Shown here one piece after another: positions 12,236-46,476 of a stretch of 64,000 nucleotides of DNA; position 1 is the stretch's first letter, and every line of letters starts with the position of its first letter. The stretch comes from Ruditapes philippinarum (lineage: Eukaryota): positions 62,001 to 126,000 of the forward strand of contig NW_026863230.1 in assembly GCF_026571515.1 (NCBI RefSeq), written 5' to 3'. The notes under the pieces were generated by a model. The model was not told the DNA's origin and ran no database searches. It saw nothing but the letters and a program-made list of their open reading frames with translations. Made by a program: the position numbers and the translations under genes.

Positions 12236-13361
12236 ACGTTATAGATTGGCGTGTATGAATCTGCTGTTGGTATCTCTTTTTATTATTTATTAGTTATGAA
12301 TATGGTTAACAAAAACAGTAATAATAACAATAGTATGTAACAGTATATAATAAAGTTTCATGCTTCAGAAAATTACTATTCTTATTTATTCAGATGCTTT
12401 TGAATATGTTTTAATACTTGTAGAAACCATCTCAATACGTTGTCTGTTCATCAAAATAGTGTATATCTTATAGGATATTTGTGATGTAGTGGTTTGCGTT
12501 CAGACGTTGAATATAAGCTATGATCGCATTGGTATATAATGAATAGAATATTTTCTATTTCGAAAAATATGTTACATAGAAACTTTGCTTGTTTGTTTGT
12601 TTGTTTGTATAAGTATATGTATAAAAATTTCGGTCTCATATTATAAATTTTGTGCCGTGGTTTTGGTTTTCATATACAGATAGCATCAGATTATTGCAAT
12701 GAATATTTGAATCATTTTAGTTTTATTAACAGACGTTGTTTTAGGTGCCAGTTAATCTAGCCAGTCGCAACAACTGCCAGATGGAGTTAAACAATCTTTG
12801 AAAAAAGAATAATGTATGATTTTTGTTCAATGTTTTGTGTATCTTCTCTCAATTACCAGTTATTTGTCTTGGTTTGATTGCTCTCGAGGAGAGTTTCCCC
12901 ATTTTCAGGATTTTCATTTAAGAGTATTAAAGAGTAAGACCCATTTCAAACACCATCACTTAAATATGCTGACACATTTTTCATGTTTAATTTGTTATAT
13001 TCAACAACGTATCATTATGAAGAATAATTATAGTTATTCAATATACATTTTTGAATGTACAATACATATAAATGCAATCTCAAAACTGATTTCAAAGTGC
13101 TGCCACTTTCAATAGGTTGAGATGGAGTAAAAGGCTTTTCAACGTTCGATTTACGTTTAGCCTGTCACATGCCCAAAGTTTTCTTGGTGATGTGGTGATA
13201 CCACCCCCTTAGAATTACAAAAAGAGAAGAGGACACATTCCCCCTGATGTACCTTTTTCATAGGGGCGGCCTCGAAAATGTGATCACTTTTTTAACAACA
13301 TGTCTCAAACAAAAAATAGTGATGGGGGCCTAAATAGGCATTTTTTCCTTAACTGATGAAA

Positions 13362-13492
13362 AAAGATTCCTGATAGGTAATATGGTCCTATATAAGCGTT
13401 TATCATTTACTTACATAACCCGAGTCGCTATGCGAGGGTTATATTGAAAAACAACTGTTTATATACGGTCATATTACCCGTCAGGAATCTTT
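13362..13492. mobile_element. Crypton-type terminal hairpin (non-autonomous remnant)
   Basis: aaagattcctgataggtaatatggtcc...ataacccgagtcgctatgcgagggttat...cggtcatattacccgtcaggaatcttt. CGAG occurs twice around the centre, as in the Crypton hairpins. Confidence 0.6.
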
Positions 13493-13522
13493 GTAAAGCA
13501 TTTGTAAAACAGCAAACTTGCA

Positions 13523-14099
13523 TTTTAGCACAACTTTTCGATAAGAATAAGTAGAGCTATTCGAGTCGCCCGAGCGTCGGCGTTACCATTATGTTAAAGT
13601 TTTTGTAACACCTCAAATATTTGCAAAGCCCATTTACATATGGCTTTGAAACTTATCACATTTGTTCACTATCATGCCCCTAACCTGTAGACAGGAGGAG
13701 GTAACTCACTCTTTCAAGTATTTTGACATAATTATGCCCCATTTTTGACTTAAAATAAAGTTTGGGTACCACCTCAAATATTTTCAAAGTCCATTGACAT
13801 ATGGCTTTGAAACTTTGCACCCTTGTTCAACATCATAACCAAAACTTGAAGACAGTAGGTGGTACCTCTATCAAGCATTTTGACAGAATTATGCCCCTTT
13901 TCCGACTTAGAATTTACATTTAAGTTTGCGTACCACCTCAAATATTTACAAAGTCCCGTGATACATGGCTTTGACACTTTGCACACTTGTTAACAATTAT
14001 AACCCAAATCTGAAGTTAGCTCTATCAAGCATTTTGACAGAATTAAGCCTATTTGTCGACTAAGAATTTACGTTAAAGTTTGTATATCACCTCAAATAT
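13523..14099 (+). mobile_element. Non-autonomous Helentron-type element, same family as 42249-43082, 3'-truncated
   Basis: 5' ttttagcacaacttttcgataagaataagtagagctatt, gcgtcggcgt microsatellite, about 165-bp tandem units matching 42465-42960 in reverse. Confidence 0.8.
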
Positions 14100-14100
14100 A

Positions 14101-14498
14101 TCTTGTACCGTGGGTGTAATTGTAAGCTGAAAGCTTAAATAAAGTTATTATCATAACGTATTTTCGGCCAATATACACTTTGACTTTTTTCTACAAATTA
14201 AAGTCATATGTTTGTGTCAATTGTTTTATTTAGGTAAAATTGATAATATCTGTCATATGTTTGTGCCAATTGTTTTATTCATGTAAAAAGAATAAAATAT
14301 TATGGAATATGGTAGATTATGCAAGAACAAATGTTTAACATTTGTTTGCGGTTTAGATCGGAATATCCGTCCCTAGGGAACCCGCCAATGGGCGGATCCC
14401 CTCGGATCGTATATTCCGATCCGAACCGCAACATATGACAGATATTATCAATTTGTTTATTTAAGCTTTCAGCTTACAAATACACCCACGGTACAAGA
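14101..14498. repeat. Nested palindrome: inverted duplication flanking a Crypton-type hairpin (14344-14432)
   Basis: 14101-14143 is the inverse of 14456-14498, and 14241-14262 is the inverse of 14429-14450. The inner hairpin is gcggtttagatcggaatat...atattccgatccgaaccgc. Confidence 0.7.
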
Positions 14499-17164
14499 CA
14501 GCACTTTTCTGACGCAGAATAGATATGTAGAGCTGCAAAATTTGGCTGTTTGCGAAAAATTGAAAGATCTTGTAGAAGCAAAATAAATTGGAAAACAAGT
14601 AGAATTTAAATGATTGGTCGATTTAAAATAAATCTTAGACATAGACAGATGTAAAAAAAATAGTTCCATTGCGCCGAGAATATGTCCATATAAATATTGG
14701 TGGGAATCGCACTGTTTGAATGATTTTGAGGACGAACTGTTCTGTTATTTTACAAATAGCAAAAGTATGTCTGTAATATCAAATAATAGTTATGAATAAA
14801 TTGTTAAATATAATCAATTTCTAGTTAAAGAAAAAACTACCTAATTTAACAAAAGATTGCAAATTTGCATTGTAGGTCTTCTGTAACTTAATGGTTAAGC
14901 TAAGCGTACTTTTCTTTTACGATTGAGAGAGAACCGCCTCTCTGATAGAATGCGTGGTTAAGGCTTTGTAACTGGTAATTTAATGATTCGTTCTTATGTC
15001 GCAGGGAAGTGATATTGATCATAGTTGTCCTGGTTCCCTTTCCCCCGTCAACGAAGACTTAATGCTAGCATACAGAGTAAGCATCATATTACATTTGGTG
15101 TATTTAAACAGAAGCTGAGCAAATGAAGTAAGTGACCTCAATCGTTACCTCTCTCAACTGTTTAAGAACGATCTACTATAGACTAGCTCTTTGGCACGTT
15201 ATTTATTAGGTAAATACAATTAGATAATGATAAAAAGAATATGACATACAGACATGACACTATCACTTCTCTTAAACGTTATTTTTAATTCCTTAAAGCT
15301 CGGTGACATGTTGTACATCAGAAAAGCTTTTTATAAGAAAATTTGAAAACAGTGTTATTTTGTTAAAATAAAAAAAAAGATACACAAAATCAAGTCTAAA
15401 TTCTCCCCATTGCTAAATAGACAAATGCATATCAACAAGACTACCAGACGCCGCTTTAGTATTTAGACTCTCTAAAAGGATAACTACACGGGTCGTGACA
15501 GGCTGTAAAATTCGTTTGCTGCGAAACTTGTGGTTAATGGGTGATTAAAATCAGAAATATTTCCGGACTGACATACAAATTATTTTGAATATTGATCGAA
15601 CTGACAGGTTTAGTTGTCCCTGAATGTATCAAAAGCGTTAGTTCACAAATGTTGATAATTTCTTGTCGTCAAGAAAATTTCTCGTCGAACGGTACAAATA
15701 ATATGCAGTCGTCAAGTAGAAAATAATATTTATATTAAACAATTGATGAAAGTATAAAATTAATATGTCTGTCCCATGAATTCAACCTTAATTCTTTTAG
15801 GCCTTATATATGTCGTTGAATTTTATTAAAACTCCTAGTTTTGAGAACTTGATTTGCATTTCCACATCTAAAAAGCGTTCATTAAACTATAATAAACCCT
15901 CATCGGCTTGATAAAATTATCCTTGGAATTGTTAAAATATTCAAAATATTGCGCAAAATTACCAGCAAGTATACCTGTTTATCTTTATGAGTAACATATT
16001 TTCATACTTTCCAGTATATTTCAGCATAATGATTATGAAGACAAGCCTCGGACATTTCTTGAGAGTGTTTTCTCTTCTATATACTCGTATATATACTTTC
16101 TGTTTGAAGCAGATTTATTTTGTAAATTCCGCCGTAGTTTTACATAGTTCTTATCAATTACTATGGTTTCATTTCGGTTTACCATATACTCATTATTACC
16201 AGCATCAAATTGTTTTCCTTACGTGTTAAAATCGTTTGAAAATTATAAGACGCCGCGTTCGCGCGACAGCTAGTAGATATACATTTGTCTTTTCAGCAAT
16301 AAGGATTTTTTTTTATTTTATTTTATTTTCTTGTTTTAACAAAATGACACTGTTTGCAAATTCTCTAATAAAATACAACATGTTACCGAGCTTGAAGCAT
16401 TAAAATTAACGTTTAACTAAAGTGATAGGGTCATGTTTGAATATTATATTTTTTTATAATTATCTAATTTGTTTTACCTTATAAATAACGTGTCAATGAG
16501 CCAGTCTTTATTCTAATGACAGGAAAAAAATTCTGTCAGGAATCAAAAGGTTTGACTAAAATACGCCACGGAGATTTTTTTGGCGCTACGGGCGTAACGG
16601 TAATGTTTTTTTGCAAAACAAGCAAAACGTGTGCTTATTCGTGAAAATAATTAACATTAAAGTCATAAAACAGAAATTATTAAGTGAAAAAGTAAGTTTG
16701 GTTTTAAAATGTATCACAATTATTTGTGGATTTAAAAAACTATCGAACATATTTATAAGCGATTGACTACCAAACATATAATTAATTAAGCTACAGCCAT
16801 AACTACCAATATAAGTGTAATTGCAGGCGGCGGCATTCTGTCCGATTCGACCATTCATATTATATAGGCCTCTATCTCTGCAAATTTCTATAAGATGTTT
16901 ACCGTTCTAATCAATAACTGTGTCTTAGAATGATCTAAAATTAACTTGCACATTATCTTCAGCAAGTTATTAATGTAAAATAAGCATGCATACGACTCAT
17001 TTTGCACATTGAACAATTTTTTAAAAATTCAAGCCATAATAGATCCGACACTGTCACTTTCCTTATGCCTCTTAACCTTCATCGGGAGGCATACAGATTT
17101 TGCGCCGTCCTTCTCTCCAAATTTGTGTCCGCACCGTAACTTTGTCATTTATAGGTGGATTTTA

Positions 17165-34500: not shown

Positions 34501-37086
34501 GTTTGCTAGCTTGTCACTTCAATGATTATCTGCATATAAAGATTAATTTCAGTTTTCTACGTTTTCCGTTTGTGTTTTTTTTATTTATAATGAGATTTGT
34601 TATTAAGCCCACAAGGCATTGTCAAAACCGGCATTTATATAAATGTTACAGTGTTAAACAAAGGGATAGTATGGTAACATTCAAAATTTTTTGTTATTGT
34701 TGTACACCAGCAGACTGGTCAGTTCTGCAAAATGTCAGAATGATTAAAGGCACATAAAATGAATCCATATCAGTACTGAAATATAAAAACAAATATTAAG
34801 TGGGGTTTTTTTTTTCTTTGTTTTTTGTTTGTTTTTTTTTTTGTTTTTTTTTTTTGTTAAAATGTCTACGTTCAGCGACAGAAATATTAATAAATTTGCT
34901 GAAATTTTCTGTCGTAGGGTATTTGACGTTGAAATCCGCGCTGGCGTCTTCGAATATTTTTATGCGAGAAAGCTATCCAGCTAGCTTACAGAACGTCGAT
35001 CGTTCTATTCAGGTGCGGTATTTGTGCCTGAAATAAAGCTGGCTGGAAAGTCGAAATATAGTGTTCGTGATTTTGAATTCTGTAGCTTTTATTACGGATT
35101 GTTGTTTGTTATCAAAAGAAAACCTCTTACATATTGTCTAATAGTTGACCATAAGCAATATGTAGATGTTTCTGTGATGACATCAATAAATTACGTAAAT
35201 CATGATAACCTTACACGTTTTGTAAATTTAATTAAAGGTAAAACTGTCCACATGTCTAAAAGTCGATTAATGCACATTAACTTAATCCATCTATTTTATC
35301 CAATTTTGAAACATATTCTTCAGTGATATTTCTTAGCCCCTTCCAACATTTCTCTTACCTACACATTTATAGATATGTCACAGTCCCATAATTTCACGAC
35401 AGAGTCTTTCATGCCTTCAAAATGTTGATCAAGTATTTAATGATCATAATGTACAAAAACAGTTATCAGTTAAATCACTTCGAATTTAAACTCTAGATTG
35501 ACATTATCATATGTAAGACATTGTTGATATTTTCAGTCACGTGTTCTTTTCTGAAATAAGATTTTTTCAGTCATATGTTCTTTGTTAAAATTAAATTATG
35601 AGTAATGTGTTCTTTGCTTAAGTGTTATTTTTCGTCATGTGTTCTTTTCGTCCATCATAGTTTCAGTTATGTAATTTTTGCTGTTATCATATTTTCAATT
35701 GGCTATAATTGTTTTCAATTATGTCTTTATTGTATTATAATATTTCAGTGATGTGATCCAGTTGAACCAACTGAAAGCTGAAGATAATTCTTTAAGTATT
35801 ATATTGAATATTTTACACAGTTAAAGGTATAATCATTCTAGATTTTAGGCTGAATGAAATTTGCTACAGTTTTCAAGTCCACATAAAGGCATAATGTAAA
35901 CTCATTTTTAGAATTATTTAAACTTTCCAGTATCTTAAAATGTGGTAGCTGAAACATTTGAAGTGAAGGAATAAGATATGATTAATCTTGTTTTTCCTGA
36001 GTTATCTACGTATCTGTAAATCAGGTTTTCTGTAACATTAATAATTATTACGTTCATTCTGTATTTCATGGTTCCTTATTTATTAATGGAGTGTGTCACA
36101 GTTGTCACTCATAGAAATATCTCTCAGTCTCACCCTTTGTTCAAACTTCTAGCATCTCATTTCCTCTGCATAATAGGCATCAATACGTAAGTATATTAAT
36201 GAATTTATATCTAACATATATGATGTGTGGCTTAAAGTGGTTATTGTTAAACAGGTTAGGATCACTCTTCACCAGGCTGTTGGTATAAGACTTTGGATCC
36301 TTTTATGTGAGTAAGCTGTCTCAGGTAGTTTACGTAAACGCTGGTTGATCTACTGGTTAATGCAACTTGAATAATGCATGATAGGATGATTTTACTAATA
36401 TAACTACGAAACTGTCATAATTATGATTGTTAATTGGTATAACTTTAAAAAAGAATCACAACCAACAAAGAAAATAACTATTGTGAAGCACCTGTTTCTT
36501 CTGTGTTTTCTGTGAGTGTGGGTATATACTTTGTTATCATGCCATTACTATGACAACTGCCTGATAAAGCCTGTCTGAGAACATCAACCTTTCTCAGTCA
36601 GTGACTTGAGAACACTTTTCCATGCTTAAACCTATGGAAAAGTCAGAGGATATCAGATTTTTCAAGCACCTCCCACTTTTTGCCGGACTACTTTCACAAT
36701 GTAAACAGCTTAAAGCATTGCAAAAAATAAAAAGATAAAACAGCCTAAATAAAACATATTTATTAAAAAAAATAATGTTACAAAAATAAATAATGATTTT
36801 TAAATGATTTAATTTTAATTAAAGGTATATTTACACAAATTCTTATTAAGATGCTTACATCTTTAAAAAACATCTTCTGCTCTTAGACATCTAAAACAAC
36901 AACAACAACAATAATATTAATAATATTAAATAATTAAAAAAAAAAGATGAATTCTTAGTAACAAAATCAGAGTAAGGACAGGAAAAAACATTAATTATAT
37001 TTACATCATTCTCAAGTTTCACAAAGATAATTATAAATAATACAAATAAGCACTTTTTAATCTTAATTTGACAATCCTTCAACTTT

Positions 37087-39387
37087 ATGGCAACGTTCAA
37101 TTTGCACTGGGATGATTTGTTGGAAGTTCAAATGATGAATATTGAAGAAATTTATGACAAGAACGAATTTAAAGTCAACACTGGTATTGATCCATCAATC
37201 TTTGATGAGGAATTTGATGAAGAAAAACAATACAATGTTACAAAGTTATTGACTGATTCTCAGCTGTCCGAGTATTCGAAGACTCCTGTTTCAACTGAAT
37301 GTCTTCAAATTCCTGAAACTGCTGCTCAATGTTCTCAAGCAGCATCTGATCAATATCCTCAAGTTGATGAAAATCACAGTGCTGTGCCTGTCCTTACTGA
37401 TGTTGCCTCTGAAAATATTAACAAAGGCTTTATAATGGTTGATATGGACTCTGTAAAGGCATTTAACGAGTCGGAAAAAAATCAGCATACAAAACGTAAA
37501 ACTAACCAACATATAAACAGGCTAAAAACTTTTCTCAAACTAAAAAACGAAACACGAGATTTCCATTCCATCCCAATGACGGAGCTGGATGAGCTTCTTG
37601 CCATGTTCCTTCTCTCCATTAAGAAAGAAGATGGAACAGACTACGAGCCGAGTAGTTTATGAGGGTACATATCTACATTTGACAGAGTTCTCCAGGAAAA
37701 TGGGTACCAATTTACCATAGCCAAAAGTTCAAGACAAGGATTTCCCCTAACAAATCAGACTAAATCGGTAATTACAATTTATTACATCTATTCAATAATC
37801 TTTTGGAAATTAAATAAATCCAGCAAAAAAGTGAATTTCAAGATACATGTATTTCATCATTATAAACTAATTCCCCCCCTGGACTTGTTTCACTTATAAT
37901 TAAAAAAAAATTGCCTGTAATGAATTTTTGCTTTTTAATTTTAAATGATCTTAATTTTCTACAAATAATCATGATATAAATCAGCTATTTTTCAAACAAC
38001 AAAATGATTAGCATGTAAATTTCAGGCAAAAACAAAAAATCTGAAAAAATCAGGTAAAGGCAACAAAGAAAATGCTGCCCAACCAATAACAGATGAAGAG
38101 ATTGACAGGCTTTATGATACCGGCCAACTAGGTCTTTCTTCACCACAGTCAATCATCAACACTTTGTGGTTAACATTTACCATACATTTCGGCATGAGAA
38201 GTGTAGAAGAACACTATCACTTATGGTAAATTTAAATGTCATCTCTATTAATTAAAAAACAGTTAATGAGTAAGATTATTAAACCTAAAAAATTAAAATG
38301 CATAAAAAACTTTTTTATTTCAAAATCACTTATCTCAAAATCTTCTAGTAACGTTTTTCTGGAACGTAAACTTTAAGGATGTTCAGAATGCCATTCAAAA
38401 TGAAATTTCATGTGGCCGAGCTTCACCGTTTCACAACCTGAAATTGGAATAAATTTATAATTTTAGTTGCATACTTAAAACTAAAAAAAAAAAAGGCATA
38501 AATTAACATGTATTTATATTAAAAATTGCACATATAAAAATATTGTTTTCAGTTGGGGCGACGTACAAGTAAAGATCGATGCGGAGGGCACTGAGTTTCT
38601 GGAACTTACAGAGCGCCAGACTAAAACACGCACTGGAGACAGCGGTGGTTCTAGGAAGGTTCCTCCACGTATGTGGTCTAGTGGAGATGAGCGGGATCCG
38701 GTATCTGCCTACAGATACTATGCGGCAAAGCGTCCACATAGATTCAGTCGGGATTCGGACCCATTTTATTTGGCACCAAGAACAACCCCACCTACAGAAT
38801 TTGACCAATGGTTTTTAAAACAGCGGGTTGGAATAAAAAAAATTGGCACACTTATGAAAACAATGACTGTAAAATCAGGCATAACACGGCACCTTACCAA
38901 CCATTCTGCCAGAAAACACACTATACAAAAGCTCATGGATTCGGACCAGGCACCTACTGATATTATGCAGATCACTGGGCATGAATGTGTACAAAGCATA
39001 ATCAATTACAGCAATATGTCTTTGAAAAAGCAAAAAACTTGCTCTAATATCTTAAGCAGATCTGCCACTTCATTGAGATCAATTAATACAAATAAATCTG
39101 CAACATGTACAAATGCTTTTTACCTTGACAATAGCACTTCTGTCCCAATGCAGTCTCCGCTGCCTGTTTTGCCATCTACACAAATCGAACCTCCTGTCTC
39201 TGCTCCAAACACTCAGTCTCAGGTAGTCAATGTTCCAACTGTTAATTACCCCACCCATTTCACTCAGGCTGGAAATGCTCCAGGTCATGTGCAGTCAATG
39301 TTTTTTGGTGCTACTGTCCATATACAGAATTTTAATATGTACAGCATGCCTCCAAGGAACGATCAAGACAGTAGCAGTCGTAATTGA
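37087..39387 (+). CDS. Crypton tyrosine recombinase (DUF3504/ZMYM-QRICH1-KCTD1-like), 3 exons, one in-frame TGA
   Basis: Exons 37087-37767, 38026-38225 and 38553-39387 (GT-AG, phases consistent). Motifs KKEDGTDYEPSSL*GYIST, GKGNKENAAQPIT, HFGMRS, WGDV, ERQTKTRTG, TNHSARK, ITGH, INYS give a complete R-K-H-R-H-Y catalytic set. Confidence 0.9.
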
Positions 39388-39913
39388 ACAGTTTTAAAAT
39401 ATTTCCGCTGAACAGCTGAGGTGAACAGGTGAACATGTGACCGAGACTCCTTCGTCCAAATCCGTTATGTTAACTGTTAAACTGTTAATTTCTGGCTAAC
39501 AGTTTGTAAAACATTGTTCTTTTTGTGTTAATCTCCTTAATAGCTTTAAAAATCACACTTGTTATCCTGTTAAAGCGCAATTAAATTCTCCAGTTTATGT
39601 CTGTTTCAGCCGGCGGCCATTTGCTAAATTTGTTGAAATGGTAATATGTTCCTACGCCAGATCAGCACTGATGATGTTTATTGTTGGTATTGTTTAATTG
39701 ACTTTGCTAAATATTTATGATAATACACAGTAAATAAATTGTTAAAGCAAATTGTACCAAAAATTGTGTTGTGTTATAAAATTATTGGTAAAAACCCTCG
39801 GACTACTTTTTTGGCGTATAACCCTCTTGTACAAAGTGGTTACCGTATTTTCAGAAATTAGCGCACCGAATTAAAAAAAAAAGATACAAAATCATAATAG
39901 TGGCATGATAAAA

Positions 39914-40063
39914 AGAATAACAGGTTACTGTCTTTTGAGAAAGGGATTTCTCAGACTCGGCTAGATATGGTCCGGAAGGGGCTCGGCAAGCCTCGCCCCT
40001 TCCAGGACCATATCTAACCTCGTCTGAGAAACCCTTTCTCAAAAGACAGTAACCTGTTATTCT
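39914..40063. repeat. 150-bp terminal hairpin of Crypton A
   Basis: agaataacaggttactgtcttttgagaaaggg...ggggctcggcaagcctcgcccc...ccctttctcaaaagacagtaacctgttattct; arms of about 69 bp, near-perfect. Confidence 0.95.
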
Positions 40064-42248
40064 CTATTTCTAACAGTCATAACCAATGTTATGGCAGAGA
40101 CAAGAATATGGCCAATGAAAGAAAATAAGCTAGCACACAATAAAAACTTATCATTGATAGGTAAGCTGATAAATTACTAGTCCAGGGGAGCCTATTTCTA
40201 CAAAAAGAAAATCAATATTTTATTTATAAATAATTATTTGGCTCAATAAATTAAATATGATAAACATGCTGTCAGATTATAAATTGACAAGATGCCAATT
40301 CTGTTATTTATGATATGAAATTCATGTTATTTGATGTGTACAGGTTGATGACTGAAAGTCTCTGTCTATAACCATTTAACTGCTTAAAAGTGTAATAATC
40401 TTGCAATAAATAAATTAAGGGTATAATGTTTATAAGTCAGTATTAATTTTCTCTGTCTGGTGCGACACAGTCACGTGACCATTTTAATGAATGTTCTTTT
40501 TACAAACATAAAGGTTGAAACCTGAGTGCGAGTATGAAAGGATAGTATTCAAATACATCAGTGCCCATTGAATAAACGTAATGTAGAAACAATTTTGAAA
40601 CAATTAACATACATGTACAATGAACAATTTGTTTTATACAGACGAGGTTTAGAGTTATGGCTGGGTAGATAAAACTATGAATATTGGGATCAAAGGAATG
40701 TTTGAGCTCATCAGGCGAGGGTATGTTAATAGCTTGCTAGAGATATTTTGTGGTAATTTTTAAAGACATTCTTTTTTGTAATTAAGTCAAAGTATGGTAA
40801 TTTATAGATTATCATTTCCTTTAATTGACTCATTTACTCATTTTTAATGTCAAATTAAGTTGAATTGTTATAATTATACTTCAAAGGATCGGAGTCCATA
40901 ATGATGACTGACCAATTATTGATATTGAAACATGTTACAATACAAATACAAAACAACAATAACTACAATTTAAAAAAACTGCCACTCTCTTTTTTAATAA
41001 TTCAACATTAGTAATACGTTCCGAGGGAAATGTATAAAAATTTTCGTTGTCCATTCAGATTATTGAATATTTATATAATATTCAGGTTTAAAATTGAACG
41101 CAAAAATGGCATATCGTCAAGTTATTTTGACTTTTTACTTGTTCACTTACCATAATTACCTTTATGAGCATTTTATCACTTTATTGCCTATGATTGTTAT
41201 TAAAATCATATTATGAGTTTAAAAAGTAATGTTTCAGTTTACACATATTTATTTTAACTTAATAATGAAATAAGTTTATGTAAATTATGTTGATAACGTT
41301 CAAGTCCTAACTTTCTGAAACAAGCCAGCCAACATCATTCAGTTTTGCCGGGTTACCATTTCCGTGGTGATGAACTCTTATTATACAATCCCATTAACAA
41401 TTAGTAGACTTATACTTTGGTTAGGGCAATTACTTTTATAAAATATAAAATGTCATAAAATGTTTCATGTGATATGAGATTTTATTAATTGTTTCAAAAA
41501 ATGCCAGAGTGCGACCATTGTGCATGCATGTTCTTTGGTAAAGTTTATATATATTTTATGTCAATTTGACAACAAATGAGATATTCTTTTTATCAGGGCA
41601 AGTAGGTCTTACACATGAAGTTTTCAACAAATTTAAAGATCCTGTATGTTGTATTTAAGGTTGTTACCACACTTAAGTGAAATTGTATATGTGTATAAAA
41701 TTATGCTTCTAAAACAAATTTCAAACATCGAAGAATATGTAAAATATGTACTGCAAATATGTGTCCACATTATATAATCATTGAAATATGTGTATTTATT
41801 ACTTATCGAAGAATTGACTTACACTTTATGGAAAATAAATTTCCAATAACCTCCCATTATTAATATGAAATACAAATTCGTAAATATCTTTACAAATATT
41901 GCTTTTTGGAACTTACAATATTGATAAATCTTCATAATAAGCATTATATTTATGATGTAAAACCATTAAAGAATTAGTTACAAGATTTTTAACAGTAAGG
42001 GTTCTATAGATGCCCAACCACAGTCGTTTTTCTGTGTCATTATGGTAGTTATGGATATTAACATATTGACTCTATACAGAGATACAAAATTCATTGCTAG
42101 CAATGCTGATTATTTTTCAAGGTCACAGGACATAATATAGCCCCTAAAATGCAGAGCATCATAGTGCATTTTGTATGATTATGTATAGATTATGTATGCA
42201 CAATATGTTTTCATTTTTTAATGTGAATGGTGTATGGTTGCATGATAA

Positions 42249-43082
42249 GCAAGAGCTGTCGGTAGGACAGCAATGCTCGACTATTCTTAGTGCTTGATAG
42301 TAAAAAAAGCCTTGATTAAAAGGTCAAATTTTCTAAGTAAAGAAAAAGGCAAAATTTTTCTTTAAATCCATATTACAGTTATAGGCCTTGGAGAGAGTCT
42401 TATTATGCTCTCAAAGAAAAGTATAAAATTTCAACATGTTTCAAAGCCTTATGTCAATGAATTTTGAGGTATTACAAAAACTTTAACGTAAATTCTAAGT
42501 CGAAAAAGGGGCATAATTTTGTCAAAATGCTTGATAGAGTTACCTCCTCCTGTCCACATGTTGGAGTCATGATGGTGAATAAGTGTGCAATGTTTCAAAG
42601 CCATATGTCAATGGACTTTGAAAATATTTGAGGTATTACAAAAACTTTAATGTAAATTCTAAGTTGTTAAAAGGGGCATAATTCTGTCAAAATGCTTTAT
42701 TGATTTACCTCCTCCTGTCTACAGGTTGAGGTCATGAAGGTGAACAAGTGTGCAAAATTTCAAAGCCATATGTCAATGGACTTTGAAAATATTTGAGGTA
42801 TTACAAAAACTTTAACGTAAATTCTAAGTCGGAAAAGGGGCATAATTCTGTCAAAATGCTTGATAGAGTTACCTCCTCCTGTCTACAGGTTGGGGTAATG
42901 ATGATGAACAAGTGTGCAAAGTTTCAAAGCCATGTGTCAATGGACTTTGAAAATATTAAAACTATTACAAAAACTTTAACATAAGTGGTTACGCCGACGC
43001 AGACGCCGACGCCGACACCGACGCCGACGCTCGGGTGACTACAATAGCTTTACTTATTCTTATCGAATAGTCGAGCTAAAAA
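42249..43082 (-). mobile_element. Complete non-autonomous Helentron-type element (HINE) with about 165-bp internal tandem repeats
   Basis: Subterminal IR gctcgactattc / gaatagtcgagc, (GACGCC)n microsatellite at about 42992-43030, three units starting about 42465, 42629 and 42794, a terminal hairpin gagctgtc-ggtag-gacagc, and an A-run at the end. Confidence 0.85.
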
Positions 43083-43090
43083 GTAAATAT

Positions 43091-46000
43091 ATAGAGGATA
43101 TTCAAGTTTTTTCTTTAAATACGTAATTTATTTTCATTGAGTGGTATGAAAATAAATAGTTCACGAGTGGCGGTAGCGACGAGTGTAATATGAAACTTTT
43201 CATACCACGAGATGAAAATGAATTACGTATCTAAAGAAAAAACTTTAAATTTCTGTTTATTATATACTTTTTCTCATTTTCAACCTTACGATTGACAAGA
43301 CTTCCCCTTTAATTTTGTGTATTGCCTGAACCGCACAACGACTTTAGCTCTTTTTTTATTTATAACGCTCTAAAAAAATTCTTCCGCTAGATTGGGATAA
43401 TTCACCTTTGAGAACGATTTATTAATTTTAGGTAACTTTTAGATTAACAGCAGATTTTTATTCTATTAATATTAATTTGAAAATTTAAAAATGGTTGTTT
43501 TCAAAAGCTTTAAATTCATCCGCTTCTGGATCATTGTTGACGCCATTTTGCGAAAGAAGGCATGTTGATTAGCAGACACGCATTAATTTGGACAAATTTA
43601 TGTCATTACGGAGGGAGGAATAGGGGAAACACATCTGAAATGTGAGAAAACGTTTATTACAGCATATGAACATCAAATTATAGACTGTCAATATGTGTAT
43701 TAAAATTATAACTTATTTATGTGTTTCAACTGTGCCAAGGGCGACAATCAGTGACATCAGATGATCAACAGATCAAAACATGTGTAACAGTAAAATGTTT
43801 CAAAACAGGAATTAACTTTAATCAACATAATTGGATCACTGATGCTAATCTTCCAAAGACAGTTTATTCTGAGTCAGAGTCTATTGGAAGTATCCTTCGG
43901 CGTTTCCTTACTGGTGGAGAGTTCATGATGGCCTAAACATTTGAATTTGATGTGTTAGACATGTTACTTGTGTGGAAATGGACATTGATATTTCCACTGA
44001 TCTGGTTTCCACTGAAAAAAAACACCTAAAAAGTCATACGGATTCCTGGGAGCCGGTTGTTGAACGTGGTCACTGATATGAGTCTCTGTGTGCTGACGAC
44101 TGGCGTAAACGTGGTGTGGAGCTGAGATATCTCTTGATTTAGTGCAGGTGTTTGGAGGTAATTTACTCAATGTCCTTTAAATATCTTTCTGTTGACTTTC
44201 ATTCAACGTGCTGTAATTGTTGACAATGTTTACATTTTTGTGGCCACTAATCTGAATGATGTGGTTGGGTGCAACGCCAGCATAATTTAATGTCTGTACC
44301 ATTCCTTTCCTTACACTGTAAATAAATGGTATTTTTTAATTTTTTTATACATTAAACTTTAAAGCAAAGTCAATCAAATTTTTAAGTCAATCACAATATT
44401 TTTAAATCTAATTATTAAACAAAAGAAGCTAGCAGCATTTAATGTAATTGAAAATTCATTAATTAAAAAAATAAAGAAATATTATAGATATTTGACGACA
44501 TATAGAACACTTTATTTTATGTAATCATTTTTTCATGTATAACATTTTTTTAAATTGCCGACAGAATTACTTATGAGGAATTTTGTTGTCGACTTGTTTT
44601 CAAATGAAATTCTAATAGTAAATCTACCGTAATAATGTTCGCACAAACTTTCAAATTAATAAAACAGTGAGGACGGTTAAATTGGTTTTTTTTTATTTTA
44701 TTGAAATATATTTTAAAGAAGATTTCTCTGATTTATGTTAAAGAAAGTTGTAAAAGTAATTTTTGCATGATTTTTCAAATATATAAAACAAGATTTATGG
44801 TTAAATAGTAATTTACATGCCACAGTTTGTTTTAATTAAGATTTGAAATAAAAATGTGTTTAATTTAATTCAAAAAATAATTTTATATAATTTTTCTAAT
44901 TTGTATACTGTTTATAGGTTTAACATTGTGAAAATATGAATTATTAAAACTTTTTTTCCTATTAATATGTTTAAATTCAATTTTTATTTATTACTTGCCT
45001 GTATGGTGTTAAATTTGGCTTATCTATGTTTGTTGCATGCTTCATATCCTTCATTATGCTGTATATTTTGTTAATCCCCATGGTACATTTCTTATACCAA
45101 GGTTTTTCATTTTCAGGTACGTTAGAAGCTACAGTTAGGAAGAATGGAGAGTTTGGCTCCAACATTGCTTCTTGACGGCTATTAGCAAATTGCTTATATA
45201 AAGCCACTGGACAACGTGCCGGATTTTCAATAACTTCATAAGCTCTTGGCTTTATTTTTCTTTGGTCACGAGGATAAGCCCCAGTCCTAGTTTTGGTTTG
45301 GCGCTCCTGACAATACACCAGATATTCGGAGCCATCATCATCAGACATCAACTTTACATCTCCCCAACAAAGAGAATGAACCTCTGTGCCAGTCCGCATA
45401 CCAATAAAATTGGTGCAAATAAACCACATAGAGTTTTGAAGTGCTCTAGGATTGTTTCCACCAAGCTGGTCAGCTGCATAGAATTTCTCTGCAACATTTT
45501 ACGTCGGATGTTATGGCAGCAGCAGCATTTGGGTTGTTGCCTTTGCCTTGTGATTTTAAGTGTTTTGTTTTTGCTTTCAACACCTGCTTACATTTCTGGA
45601 AAACCTGATCTTTGGATAGTGAAAAGCCATATTGGTTCACATTTAGAAACCTTTGAATGCTTTGGAACTTTGATATTAGAGAGTTTGGCTCATATTCCTG
45701 GCCATCTTTTTTCCTTACTGCATATATAAAACTACTCACATAGGCAGATAACTCTTCAGGAGGGATTTGAAGTATTGGCCTACTTTCAGCCACAGAGACC
45801 AAAATTTCTTGGAATAATTTAATGTCTTGGTCAGTTTTAAATTTAGTATTCTTATTAATGCCATCTTCAAGAAATTTGAAGTAACAAATCGTGGATTACC
45901 AATATTTATTATGTTGCTGACATCTTCATCTTGTTCAGAAGGAAGAACTACCGGTTCATTCTCATTGACATTATTTGGAACTGATTCATCATCCTGTTGC

Positions 46001-46476
46001 AAGATCATAGCTGCCTCAATCAAATGAAAATCAATGTTGGCCAAGAACTCATCTTCTTCATTGTCTATTTCAATGTCTAACTCAATGTTGCTTTCTTGTG
46101 ACATTTTGCAGAAGACAAAACTGATTTTCAAGCTTTTGACATAGTTACTATTAGTCTAATAAGCATCTATTGATACAGATTTTATGTAAGGAATAGAACT
46201 GAATAGAACAGAAATTTGTTAAAGGGACACTCTTTTTTGTACTGAATTGTTTTTGATTATAAAATTATTATAAATTATTTTTTTTCCCTTTTTAAAAAAA
46301 TTATTAAACTGCTGTGAATTTAGAAGAAAGTAGTCCGGCAAAACACCAGTGAAAATACGGAAAATATGTTTCACTGCAGTGAAAAATAAATTTTTACAGT
46401 GAAAATACGGAAAATGAAAATACGCGTTTTATTTCATCAATATTTCTCAATCTTTCATTTATAAGTATATAATAAA
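43091..46476 (-). mobile_element. Crypton tyrosine-recombinase DNA transposon, copy B (different family), full length but degenerate
   Basis: Terminal hairpin about 43091-43255; 14-bp IR tttattatatactt (43256-43269) / aagtatataataaa (46463-46476); recombinase gene inside. Confidence 0.85.
43864..46104 (-). pseudogene. Crypton tyrosine recombinase B, 2 exons, frameshifts and stops
   Basis: Exon 46104-44999: MSQESN...RKKDGQEYEPNSL...GKGNNPNAA.../FIGMRTG...WGDV...ERQTKTRTG...RCPVALYK...LTPY. GC-AG intron. Exon 44315-43864: SVRKGMVQTL...QISGHKNV...NNYS..., ending RKRRRILPIDSDSE*. Confidence 0.85.

Follow-up and report, generated by a model that had tools for sequence, protein, structure and literature searches.

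Two transposons of the Crypton type, here called A and B, lie within a 64,000-nt stretch of the Manila clam (Ruditapes philippinarum) genome (assembly GCF_026571515.1, contig NW_026863230.1, positions 62,001 to 126,000 of the forward strand). This stretch is referred to as the window, and all coordinates are counted from its first letter. Each element ends in a long imperfect hairpin whose two strands are not equivalent. The question raised by the locus is in what form these hairpins act and which enzyme reads them. The initial annotation of the window proposed that the tyrosine recombinases encoded by the elements recognise an extruded, strand-specific DNA hairpin, as the integron integrase IntI does at attC. 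Strand-specific DNA folding of the hairpins is well supported by comparison of copies and families; the attC-like role of the recombinase is plausible but unproven.

The long terminal hairpins described by the initial annotation were found at, or close to, the places it gave. The A hairpin occupies 39914-40063 and the core of the B hairpin 43104-43246, with weaker pairing extending the B arms to 43089-43260. The palindrome is about 145-150 nt long in both Cryptons and stands at the 3' end of the element. Genome copies cease to align 4 nt (A) and about 13-19 nt (B) past the stem; both hairpins are thus terminal. Folding as single-stranded DNA (ssDNA) gives -70 kcal/mol for A (z = -21.7 against shuffled sequences) and -39 kcal/mol for B (z = -10.3). 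The arms of A and B have no detectable similarity to each other, as had been claimed.

The mismatches interrupting these stems follow one pattern, and the tetramers quoted at mirror positions proved exact. The + strand of A reads CTCG, and the - strand CGAG, at two mismatch pairs, 39956-59/40019-22 and 39982-85/39992-95. The + strand of B, which is antisense to the gene, reads TGAG at 43138-41 opposite CGAG at 43208-11, and CGAG at 43164-67 opposite CGAG at 43180-83, with a GGTA apex. Since the outer bases of the tetramers pair, every site forms a 2x2 loop. Read on the antisense strand, all four loops are CGAG/CGAG or TGAG/CGAG (C/T-GA-G opposite C-GA-G), so that each site presents G.A/A.G on the antisense strand and T.C/C.T on the mRNA strand. 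Single mismatches are G.T on the CGAG strand and A.C on the mRNA strand, and the apical loops C-GTA-G or GGTA (GNNA type) appear on the CGAG strand alone. The CGAG strand is the complement of the mRNA in both elements, in agreement with the initial annotation, and begins with 5'-ATAGAG at the element end. The sequence 5'-Y-GA-R-3' opposite itself forms stable sheared tandem G.A pairs, and C-GNA-G forms very stable DNA mini-hairpins.

These features are fixed within each family. Both CTCG/CTCG sites of A are kept in 30/30 copies, and the A copies are too alike for covariation to be visible. Genome-wide, the asymmetric flank together with the CTCG form was found 75 times and the mirror form once. 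The A hairpin therefore does not flip-flop, which rules out a parvovirus-like exchange of orientations and bears out the claim that the asymmetry is fixed relative to gene orientation and terminus. In an alignment of 31 B copies 97.9% of cells are paired, and four stem pairs have changed on both sides between subfamilies (A-T to T-A, A-T to G-C, T-A to G-C and G-C to A-T). None of 500 shuffles and none of the slid controls reached the B covariation score. The inner B site is GA/GA in 31/31 copies and the outer left site is GA in 28/31, whereas the outer right site is CGAG in 5 and CAAG in 25 of the 31. Mismatch placement is thus fixed by family and not random. The expectation that YGAR sites stay invariant while the arms diverge held for the inner B site, in a stem with four compensated pairs, and failed at the outer right site. 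Some of the variants (TGAG, CAAG) are explained by CpG decay.

The one-sided changes in B carry further information. Those fixed in subfamilies (alignment columns 49/140, 65/124 and 84/103) all give G.T on the CGAG strand, whereas private changes that arose after insertion are balanced, with about 9 G.T events and 8 A.C events. This is the contrast predicted by selection on the CGAG-strand fold in active lineages, and the pattern looks selected.

The flanks of the loci recovered around A and B copies were scanned for other hairpins, with one representative taken per family for counts of loops and pairs. At least six further families with unrelated arms follow the plan of A and B: an outer stem, Y-GA-R, a stem of 15-26 bp, CGAG, a G+C stem of 2-5 bp, a loop, and the mirror image. 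In the eight family representatives 16/16 2x2 loops are GA-type on the CGAG strand, G.T pairs number 16 on that strand and 2 on the other, and the CGAG strand is the more stable in 7/8. Four families have the C-GTA-G apex. In families A, B, E, G and H the strand beginning at the element end is the CGAG strand. Family E (8 copies, about 370 bp) has the 5' end and terminal inverted repeat TTTATCACACAC, the same 3' end ...AATATCCTCTAT as B, and a 141-nt hairpin with three GA sites. Family H has its repeat and end as in B, and the hairpin of family G lies at one fixed end.

Genome-wide, the apex pattern CGAG-N1-4-CGTAG-N1-4-CGAG occurs 6,479 times, versus 28 for a reversed control. Among the apex matches listed, the stems are almost all complementary and of at least four types. 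Among the CGAG-sided matches listed, the partner is mostly CGAG, with a few CAAG and one paired CTCG, a qualitative result since the counts are inflated by register shifts. Judged by these shared sequence features, A and B are two of a far larger set of elements with hairpin ends in the clam genome, which amounts to thousands of insertions. The G.T bias, the GA-type loops, the GNA/GNNA apical loops and the 75:1 polarity together support, as a signature in the sequence, one defined folded strand.

By their coding content A and B are Crypton-A-type (DUF3504 clade) tyrosine-recombinase transposons and fall within the enzyme-based definition of that group. The full-length A copy (3534 bp, 36534-40067, + strand) has a gene of three exons (37087-37766, 38025-38224 and 38552-39390) encoding QRICH1-like and DUF3504/Phage_integrase domains. 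The exons contain the complete catalytic set, R (GMRSVEE), H-x-x-R (HSAR), H (GHE) and Y (INYS). The gene is expressed: an RNA contig from a public run is spliced, with GT..AG introns at 37767-38024 and 38225-38551. In the window copy the open reading frame (ORF) is broken by a stop in exon 1 (37660-37662), where other copies have Arg; the insertion is still polymorphic between individuals.

The full-length B copy (about 3.39 kb, 43085-46476, - strand) has a frameshifted ORF. Its gene lies at 44160-46131 on the - strand, with QRICH1-like and DUF3504 ORFs at 46131-44977 and a downstream exon near 44245 (GHKNVNIVNNY) that includes the catalytic Tyr. The B recombinase keeps GH...Y, with Y replacing the first H of HxxR, and other B copies have intact 389-aa ORFs. 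The A and B products match the same Pfam entries (PF12012, PF00589 and PF25561) and share about 36% identity in the core. The tyrosine recombinase is the sole protein within the A and B boundaries, which hold no other long ORF and no reverse transcriptase or DDE transposase. A homologous-protein search returned 18 relatives, the best named one being a protein of Ruditapes philippinarum.

The boundaries of the elements place the hairpins in a definite layout. In a multi-copy alignment Crypton A begins at 36534 (TTATCATGCC...), and its copies end at ...TTATTCTCTAT, which is window position 40067; a search of the window's own genome with the A end gave 494 candidate copies at 96-99% identity. The 5' terminal inverted repeat (36534-36553, + strand) starts with TTATCATGCC and is the complement of a subterminal repeat at 39892-39911 (+ strand), 2 nt upstream of the hairpin. 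It shows no variation in 34 copies and is included in a short 5' hairpin. The element closes with CTCTAT (40062-40067, + strand), a 3' motif common to families A, B, E and H. Non-autonomous A derivatives of 498 bp keep the 5' 83 nt and the 3' 420 nt or so, with the hairpin. The A 5' region also has 11-nt inverted repeats, CTGTCTGAGAA and TTCTCAGTCAG, at 36571-36601 with a 9-nt spacer between them, and a TCTGAGAA motif that recurs in both arms of the 3' hairpin, adjoining the outer CTCG sites. The TCTGAGAA motif is a candidate protein-binding site, and the 83-nt 5' part of the non-autonomous copies retains it.

Crypton B has its 5' end at 46476 (TTTATTATATAC...). Its alignments run to ...AATATCCTCTAT, after which comes a semi-conserved ATATTT (window 43091 to 43085); the 3' CTCTAT is at 43091-43096, and ATATTT reaches 43085. 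A search of the same genome with the B end gave 2,081 candidates at 85-95% identity. The first 12 nt of the element (46465-46476, - strand) form the terminal inverted repeat, a perfect inverted complement of 43256-43267, where the + strand reads TTTATTATATAC. This subterminal partner lies 9 nt past the hairpin on the gene-proximal side. Non-autonomous B derivatives of 399 bp keep the 5' 161 nt and about 236 nt of the 3' end, hairpin included. The B 5' region (46316-46420, - strand) has two direct copies of TTTTCCGTATTTTCACTG and a perfect 8+8-nt palindrome, TTTCACTG/CAGTGAAA; the TTTCAC motif is found again ahead of the CGAG sites of the B hairpin.

The window copy of A is a recent, polymorphic and precise insertion without target duplication, because a second individual has the empty site: in its DNA contigs 36533 is followed directly by 40068, with 2 nt (TT) fitting either side. 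A second allele differs by 1 base. The empty site is G^TT, and the preceding base is T for 32/34 A insertions. Flank logos beside the A and B ends are T-rich, the B flanks being less clear on T-T insertion. Insertions share 1-3 nt between end and target, in T-rich DNA and with no target duplication.

Some copies have inserted into resident copies at a particular point, the pseudo-junction between the hairpin base and the inverted repeat; this was found for A (locus L030) and for E (locus L046). At L030:1064-2061 (G000:C4941) a 499-bp non-autonomous A lies inside another A copy of opposite orientation, exactly between the resident hairpin base (plus TT) and the subterminal repeat TTATCATGCC. 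The product resembles an inverted dimer with shared hairpins. At L046:353-560 the 5' end of one E copy has landed at the pseudo-junction of a second. Two A insertions (L067:1270-1500 and the 5' flank of L028) lie 27-29 bp past the same family I hairpin element, 2 bp apart, suggesting that the ends of related elements are preferred targets. Landing at pseudo-junctions and beside the ends of hairpin elements would be the behaviour of a site-specific recombinase and is counted in favour of one. The sole exact genome-wide match to the mirror ("flop") A hairpin beside the A subterminal repeat, at G000:C11590:74794-74849, may be a nested insertion like that of L030. Two further arrangements were observed. 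At L043:1120-1534 (G000:C6866) two 399-bp B copies stand head to head with 11 bp between them (TGTAAAATACA), forming a 415-bp palindrome with 202/206 positions paired. At L047 a B copy is nested within an E copy.

The ends described here depart from the published description of Cryptons, not from the enzyme-based definition. Animal Cryptons have been described as lacking terminal repeats (PMC3212892), and a 2026 paper on DUF3504 CryptonA elements gives short direct repeats alone (PMC13465315). The literature search returned no description of hairpins or asymmetric inverted repeats at Crypton ends. Like the described Cryptons (fungal CryptonF/S, animal CryptonA/I), A and B have a single tyrosine-recombinase gene of the DUF3504/QRICH1-related clade, make no target duplication, have a few bases common to ends and target, and give rise to non-autonomous derivatives; unlike them, they have a 150-nt terminal palindrome and asymmetric inverted repeats. 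Crypton-A has been reported as one of the most active element groups of bivalves (bioRxiv 10.64898/2026.02.10.705023), and its insertions rank among the most polymorphic reported in bivalve genomes.

Functional parallels come from bacteria, phages and viruses. Integron attC sites, recombined by the tyrosine recombinase IntI, are likewise imperfect palindromes in which structure is conserved over sequence, one strand folds, and fixed non-Watson-Crick features set the strand choice. They differ in being bacterial, in length (57-141 nt) and in using extrahelical bases instead of tandem G.A, and IntI is no close relative of Crypton enzymes. Folding and single-strand exchange are demonstrated for attC; for the clam elements they are deduced. 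The attP(+) site of CTX phage, recombined by XerCD, is a forked hairpin folded from a single-stranded genome, and its stem makes the recombinase site, with an unpaired centre and exchange of one strand. The CTX hairpin, a phage structure, masks two inverted dif-like sites with Xer-binding arms, whereas no such arms were recognised in the clam hairpins. The subterminal hairpins of IS200/IS605 elements are also imperfect end hairpins read strand-specifically, although by an HUH (Y1) enzyme, and they are shorter. In minute virus of mice (MVM) the GA/GAA bubble of the left end is likewise a small fixed mismatch that breaks the symmetry of a palindromic end. The MVM enzyme, however, is NS1, the hairpins are shorter, and the ends flip-flop or are resolved by replication, in contrast to the fixed orientation in the clam.

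With these parallels in mind, the A and B hairpins are tentatively taken to be 3'-terminal cis signals, the folded strand of which is recognised by the Crypton recombinase in the manner of attC or CTX attP. This is the best single explanation, and its probability is placed a little below even. The hairpin would fold as ssDNA on the strand complementary to the mRNA. When the ends meet, in a circle or on one folded strand, the palindrome would continue across the 3'-5' joint, because the stretch directly upstream of the hairpin has its inverted complement in the initial 10-20 nt of the element. CTCTAT and a short T run would stay unpaired at the exchange point, opposite 2-9 unpaired bases. The element's own recombinase would then read the folded junction and swap one strand with the target, on the model of IntI at attC and XerCD at CTX attP.

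Several lines of evidence argue for the recombinase. Two apparently old and diverged families keep the same architecture, the CTCTAT end and the gene polarity despite about 36% protein identity and unrelated arms. The sole protein appears catalytically complete, in that its catalytic residues are kept, and the A gene yields spliced transcripts. Non-autonomous derivatives retain the terminal hairpins, whose mismatches are family-fixed. The arms are several times the length of Helentron palindromes, and A and B seem to form no tandems. A broader hypothesis would be that animal Crypton-A elements move through a strand-specific ssDNA intermediate, that the terminal inverted repeat and the long hairpin draw the two ends together, that the G.A/GNA-GNNA code is independent of protein and one strand is exchanged by the tyrosine recombinase at the unpaired CTCTAT/T run, that the Helitron2 layout is convergent, and that the same system, in effect attC/CTX recombination in a eukaryote, also mobilises many thousands of non-autonomous elements in bivalves. 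In this full form it is doubtful.

A number of observations weigh against recognition of the folded strand by the recombinase. Conventional inverted recombinase-binding arms around the crossover were looked for in the ends, and none was recognised. The joint 40067 -> 36534 expected of a circle was not found in one RNA read set and three contig sets, although contigs cannot show rare forms. The predicted stability gap between the two strands is just 2-7 kcal/mol. The gap is small because the DNA energy tables barely separate the two loop types: the ViennaRNA DNA parameters give near-equal energies to GA/GA and TC/TC loops and have no model of sheared G.A pairs, and the sheared-pair claim is therefore beyond their reach. 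Perfect tandem G.A is not obligatory at the B outer site, judging from the copies, because the largest and most successful B subfamily has G.A + A.A there. The evidence comes from one genome. At L047:1740-2190 a head-to-tail junction of family E (CCTCTA-TTT-ATCACAC) was found, the one such case. Finally, the layout of the ends is that of Helitron2/Helentron elements, which are mobilised by HUH enzymes, and Rep genes with long open frames are present in the genome.

The last point defines the main rival, which follows from the Helitron2-like layout together with the Rep matches. Helitron2/Helentron elements, the HINE derivatives of oysters included, have a 5' inverted repeat 0-2 nt from the end with its partner directly upstream of a 3' hairpin, and insert with a 5' T into T-rich or TT targets without target duplication (PMC3627910, PMC4067079, PMC7492417). 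The ends of A and B fit this published definition. The likeness to Helitron2, Helentron, HINE and DINE-1 elements extends over the asymmetric inverted repeats, the 3' palindrome, the 5' T, the T-rich targets and the lack of duplication, as well as the many short non-autonomous derivatives and the compensatory changes by which pairing is maintained. On this view a Rep/Hel HUH enzyme from another locus of the genome would nick and transfer one strand, the hairpin would be its single-strand termination or recognition signal, and the recombinase gene would be a long-standing cargo or helper. At least 71 Helitron_like_N (Rep) matches, with open frames up to 2,643 aa, lie elsewhere in the genome; HUH enzymes do work on a single strand and read hairpins; and the short 5' hairpin containing the A terminal repeat and the E junction at L047 also fit. 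Against this, full-length A and B copies encode a catalytically complete tyrosine recombinase and no Rep, Hel or endonuclease, and the association of recombinase and ends has been kept in two families at 36% identity, unexpected for decaying cargo. The fold-competent strand, with its fixed tandem G.A/GNA-loop code, lies opposite the strand that shows the Helitron layout from 5' to 3'; it is not the one expected to be displaced by a Rep. At about 150 nt (arms 65-70 nt) the palindrome exceeds the 10-40 nt (arms 5-20 nt) of described Helentrons, and head-to-tail A or B tandem junctions number zero in the assembly. Mobilisation by a Rep is on balance unlikely.

Other explanations dispense with ssDNA recognition by a transposition enzyme. 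The hairpin could work as a duplex or cruciform or have another role in cis: the mirrored tetramers may break the symmetry so that a protein complex assembles in one orientation (compare the MVM bubble), the palindrome may prime or start complementary-strand synthesis, or the mismatches may simply protect a long palindrome from instability in the genome. A long palindrome is unstable when it is perfect and gains stability from asymmetry at its centre. Such a role would suit the four CGAG copies that stand in direct orientation within an otherwise symmetric duplex, and the inverted dimer at L030 and the 415-bp palindrome at L043 put the ends in fold-back rearrangements. A duplex role makes no prediction, however, of G.T over A.C or of GNA/GNNA loops on one strand. 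Just the 4-nt CGAG is common to the families, at a spacing varying from 15 to 26 nt, and it would therefore be a poor sequence-specific duplex site. For mere stability any mismatch would serve, yet 16/16 2x2 loops are GA-type. These roles are together distinctly unlikely. An RNA hairpin transcribed from the antisense strand, as a small-RNA precursor or regulatory RNA, would account for the asymmetry of G.U type, a classic sign of RNA structure, and tandem G.A is also an RNA feature; the hairpin is covered by RNA libraries. In Rfam the CGAG strand of both hairpins gave sub-threshold miRNA-precursor matches alone, at 44-48 bits versus gathering scores of 100. C-GTA-G triloops are a signature of DNA mini-hairpins, not of RNA. 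An antisense transcript would have to start in the flanking DNA of each insertion, the RNA library, which was unstranded, showed no antisense bias, and the structure is always placed right at the end used in transposition and has the 5' terminus as its pairing partner; an RNA function is highly improbable. Chance, or a by-product of mutation in decaying palindromes, draws on the CpG decay behind TGAG and CAAG. Each GA/GA loop, though, needs two adjacent transversions in one arm, and the loops are family-fixed, turn up in no fewer than eight unrelated families and always occupy one and the same strand with respect to the terminus. With the 75:1 orientation, the excess of apex motifs over the control and the loop and pair tallies, these sequence data effectively refute it.

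Recognition of a folded strand by the Crypton recombinase, or by a Rep, would have different consequences. To our knowledge the mechanism of Crypton transposition has never been put to the test. With defined ends, an empty site, a polar cis structure and natural variants, the mechanism becomes directly testable in these elements. Should the recombinase read the fold, eukaryotes would have their first case of site-specific recombination of a folded single strand by a tyrosine recombinase. Should a Rep read it, elements carrying a recombinase would be passengers of a rolling-circle system, likewise a novelty. Under either reading, thousands of Manila clam insertions bear the CGAG/C-GTA-G hairpin code, which could serve for annotation of a large, unclassified class of bivalve repeats. 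The literature searched contains no description of a tyrosine-recombinase transposon that joins Helitron2-like ends with a fixed G.A/GNA hairpin code.

Other palindromes and repeats are present in the window. A 150-nt imperfect hairpin lies at 13351-13503, and a nested foldback at 14100-14500 has a central 86-nt hairpin (14346-14431). Both hairpins were considered as CGAG-type and ruled out on their different architecture; each has a 2-nt mismatch of TA opposite CG. Two copies of another repeat, at 42250-43068 and 13541-14100, each contain tandem units of about 130-165 bp, with TTCGATAAGAATAAG at their start, and a (GCGTCG)n microsatellite. This repeat has a likeness to the satellite-carrying HINE/pearl-type elements of bivalves, and one copy abuts the 3' end of Crypton B.

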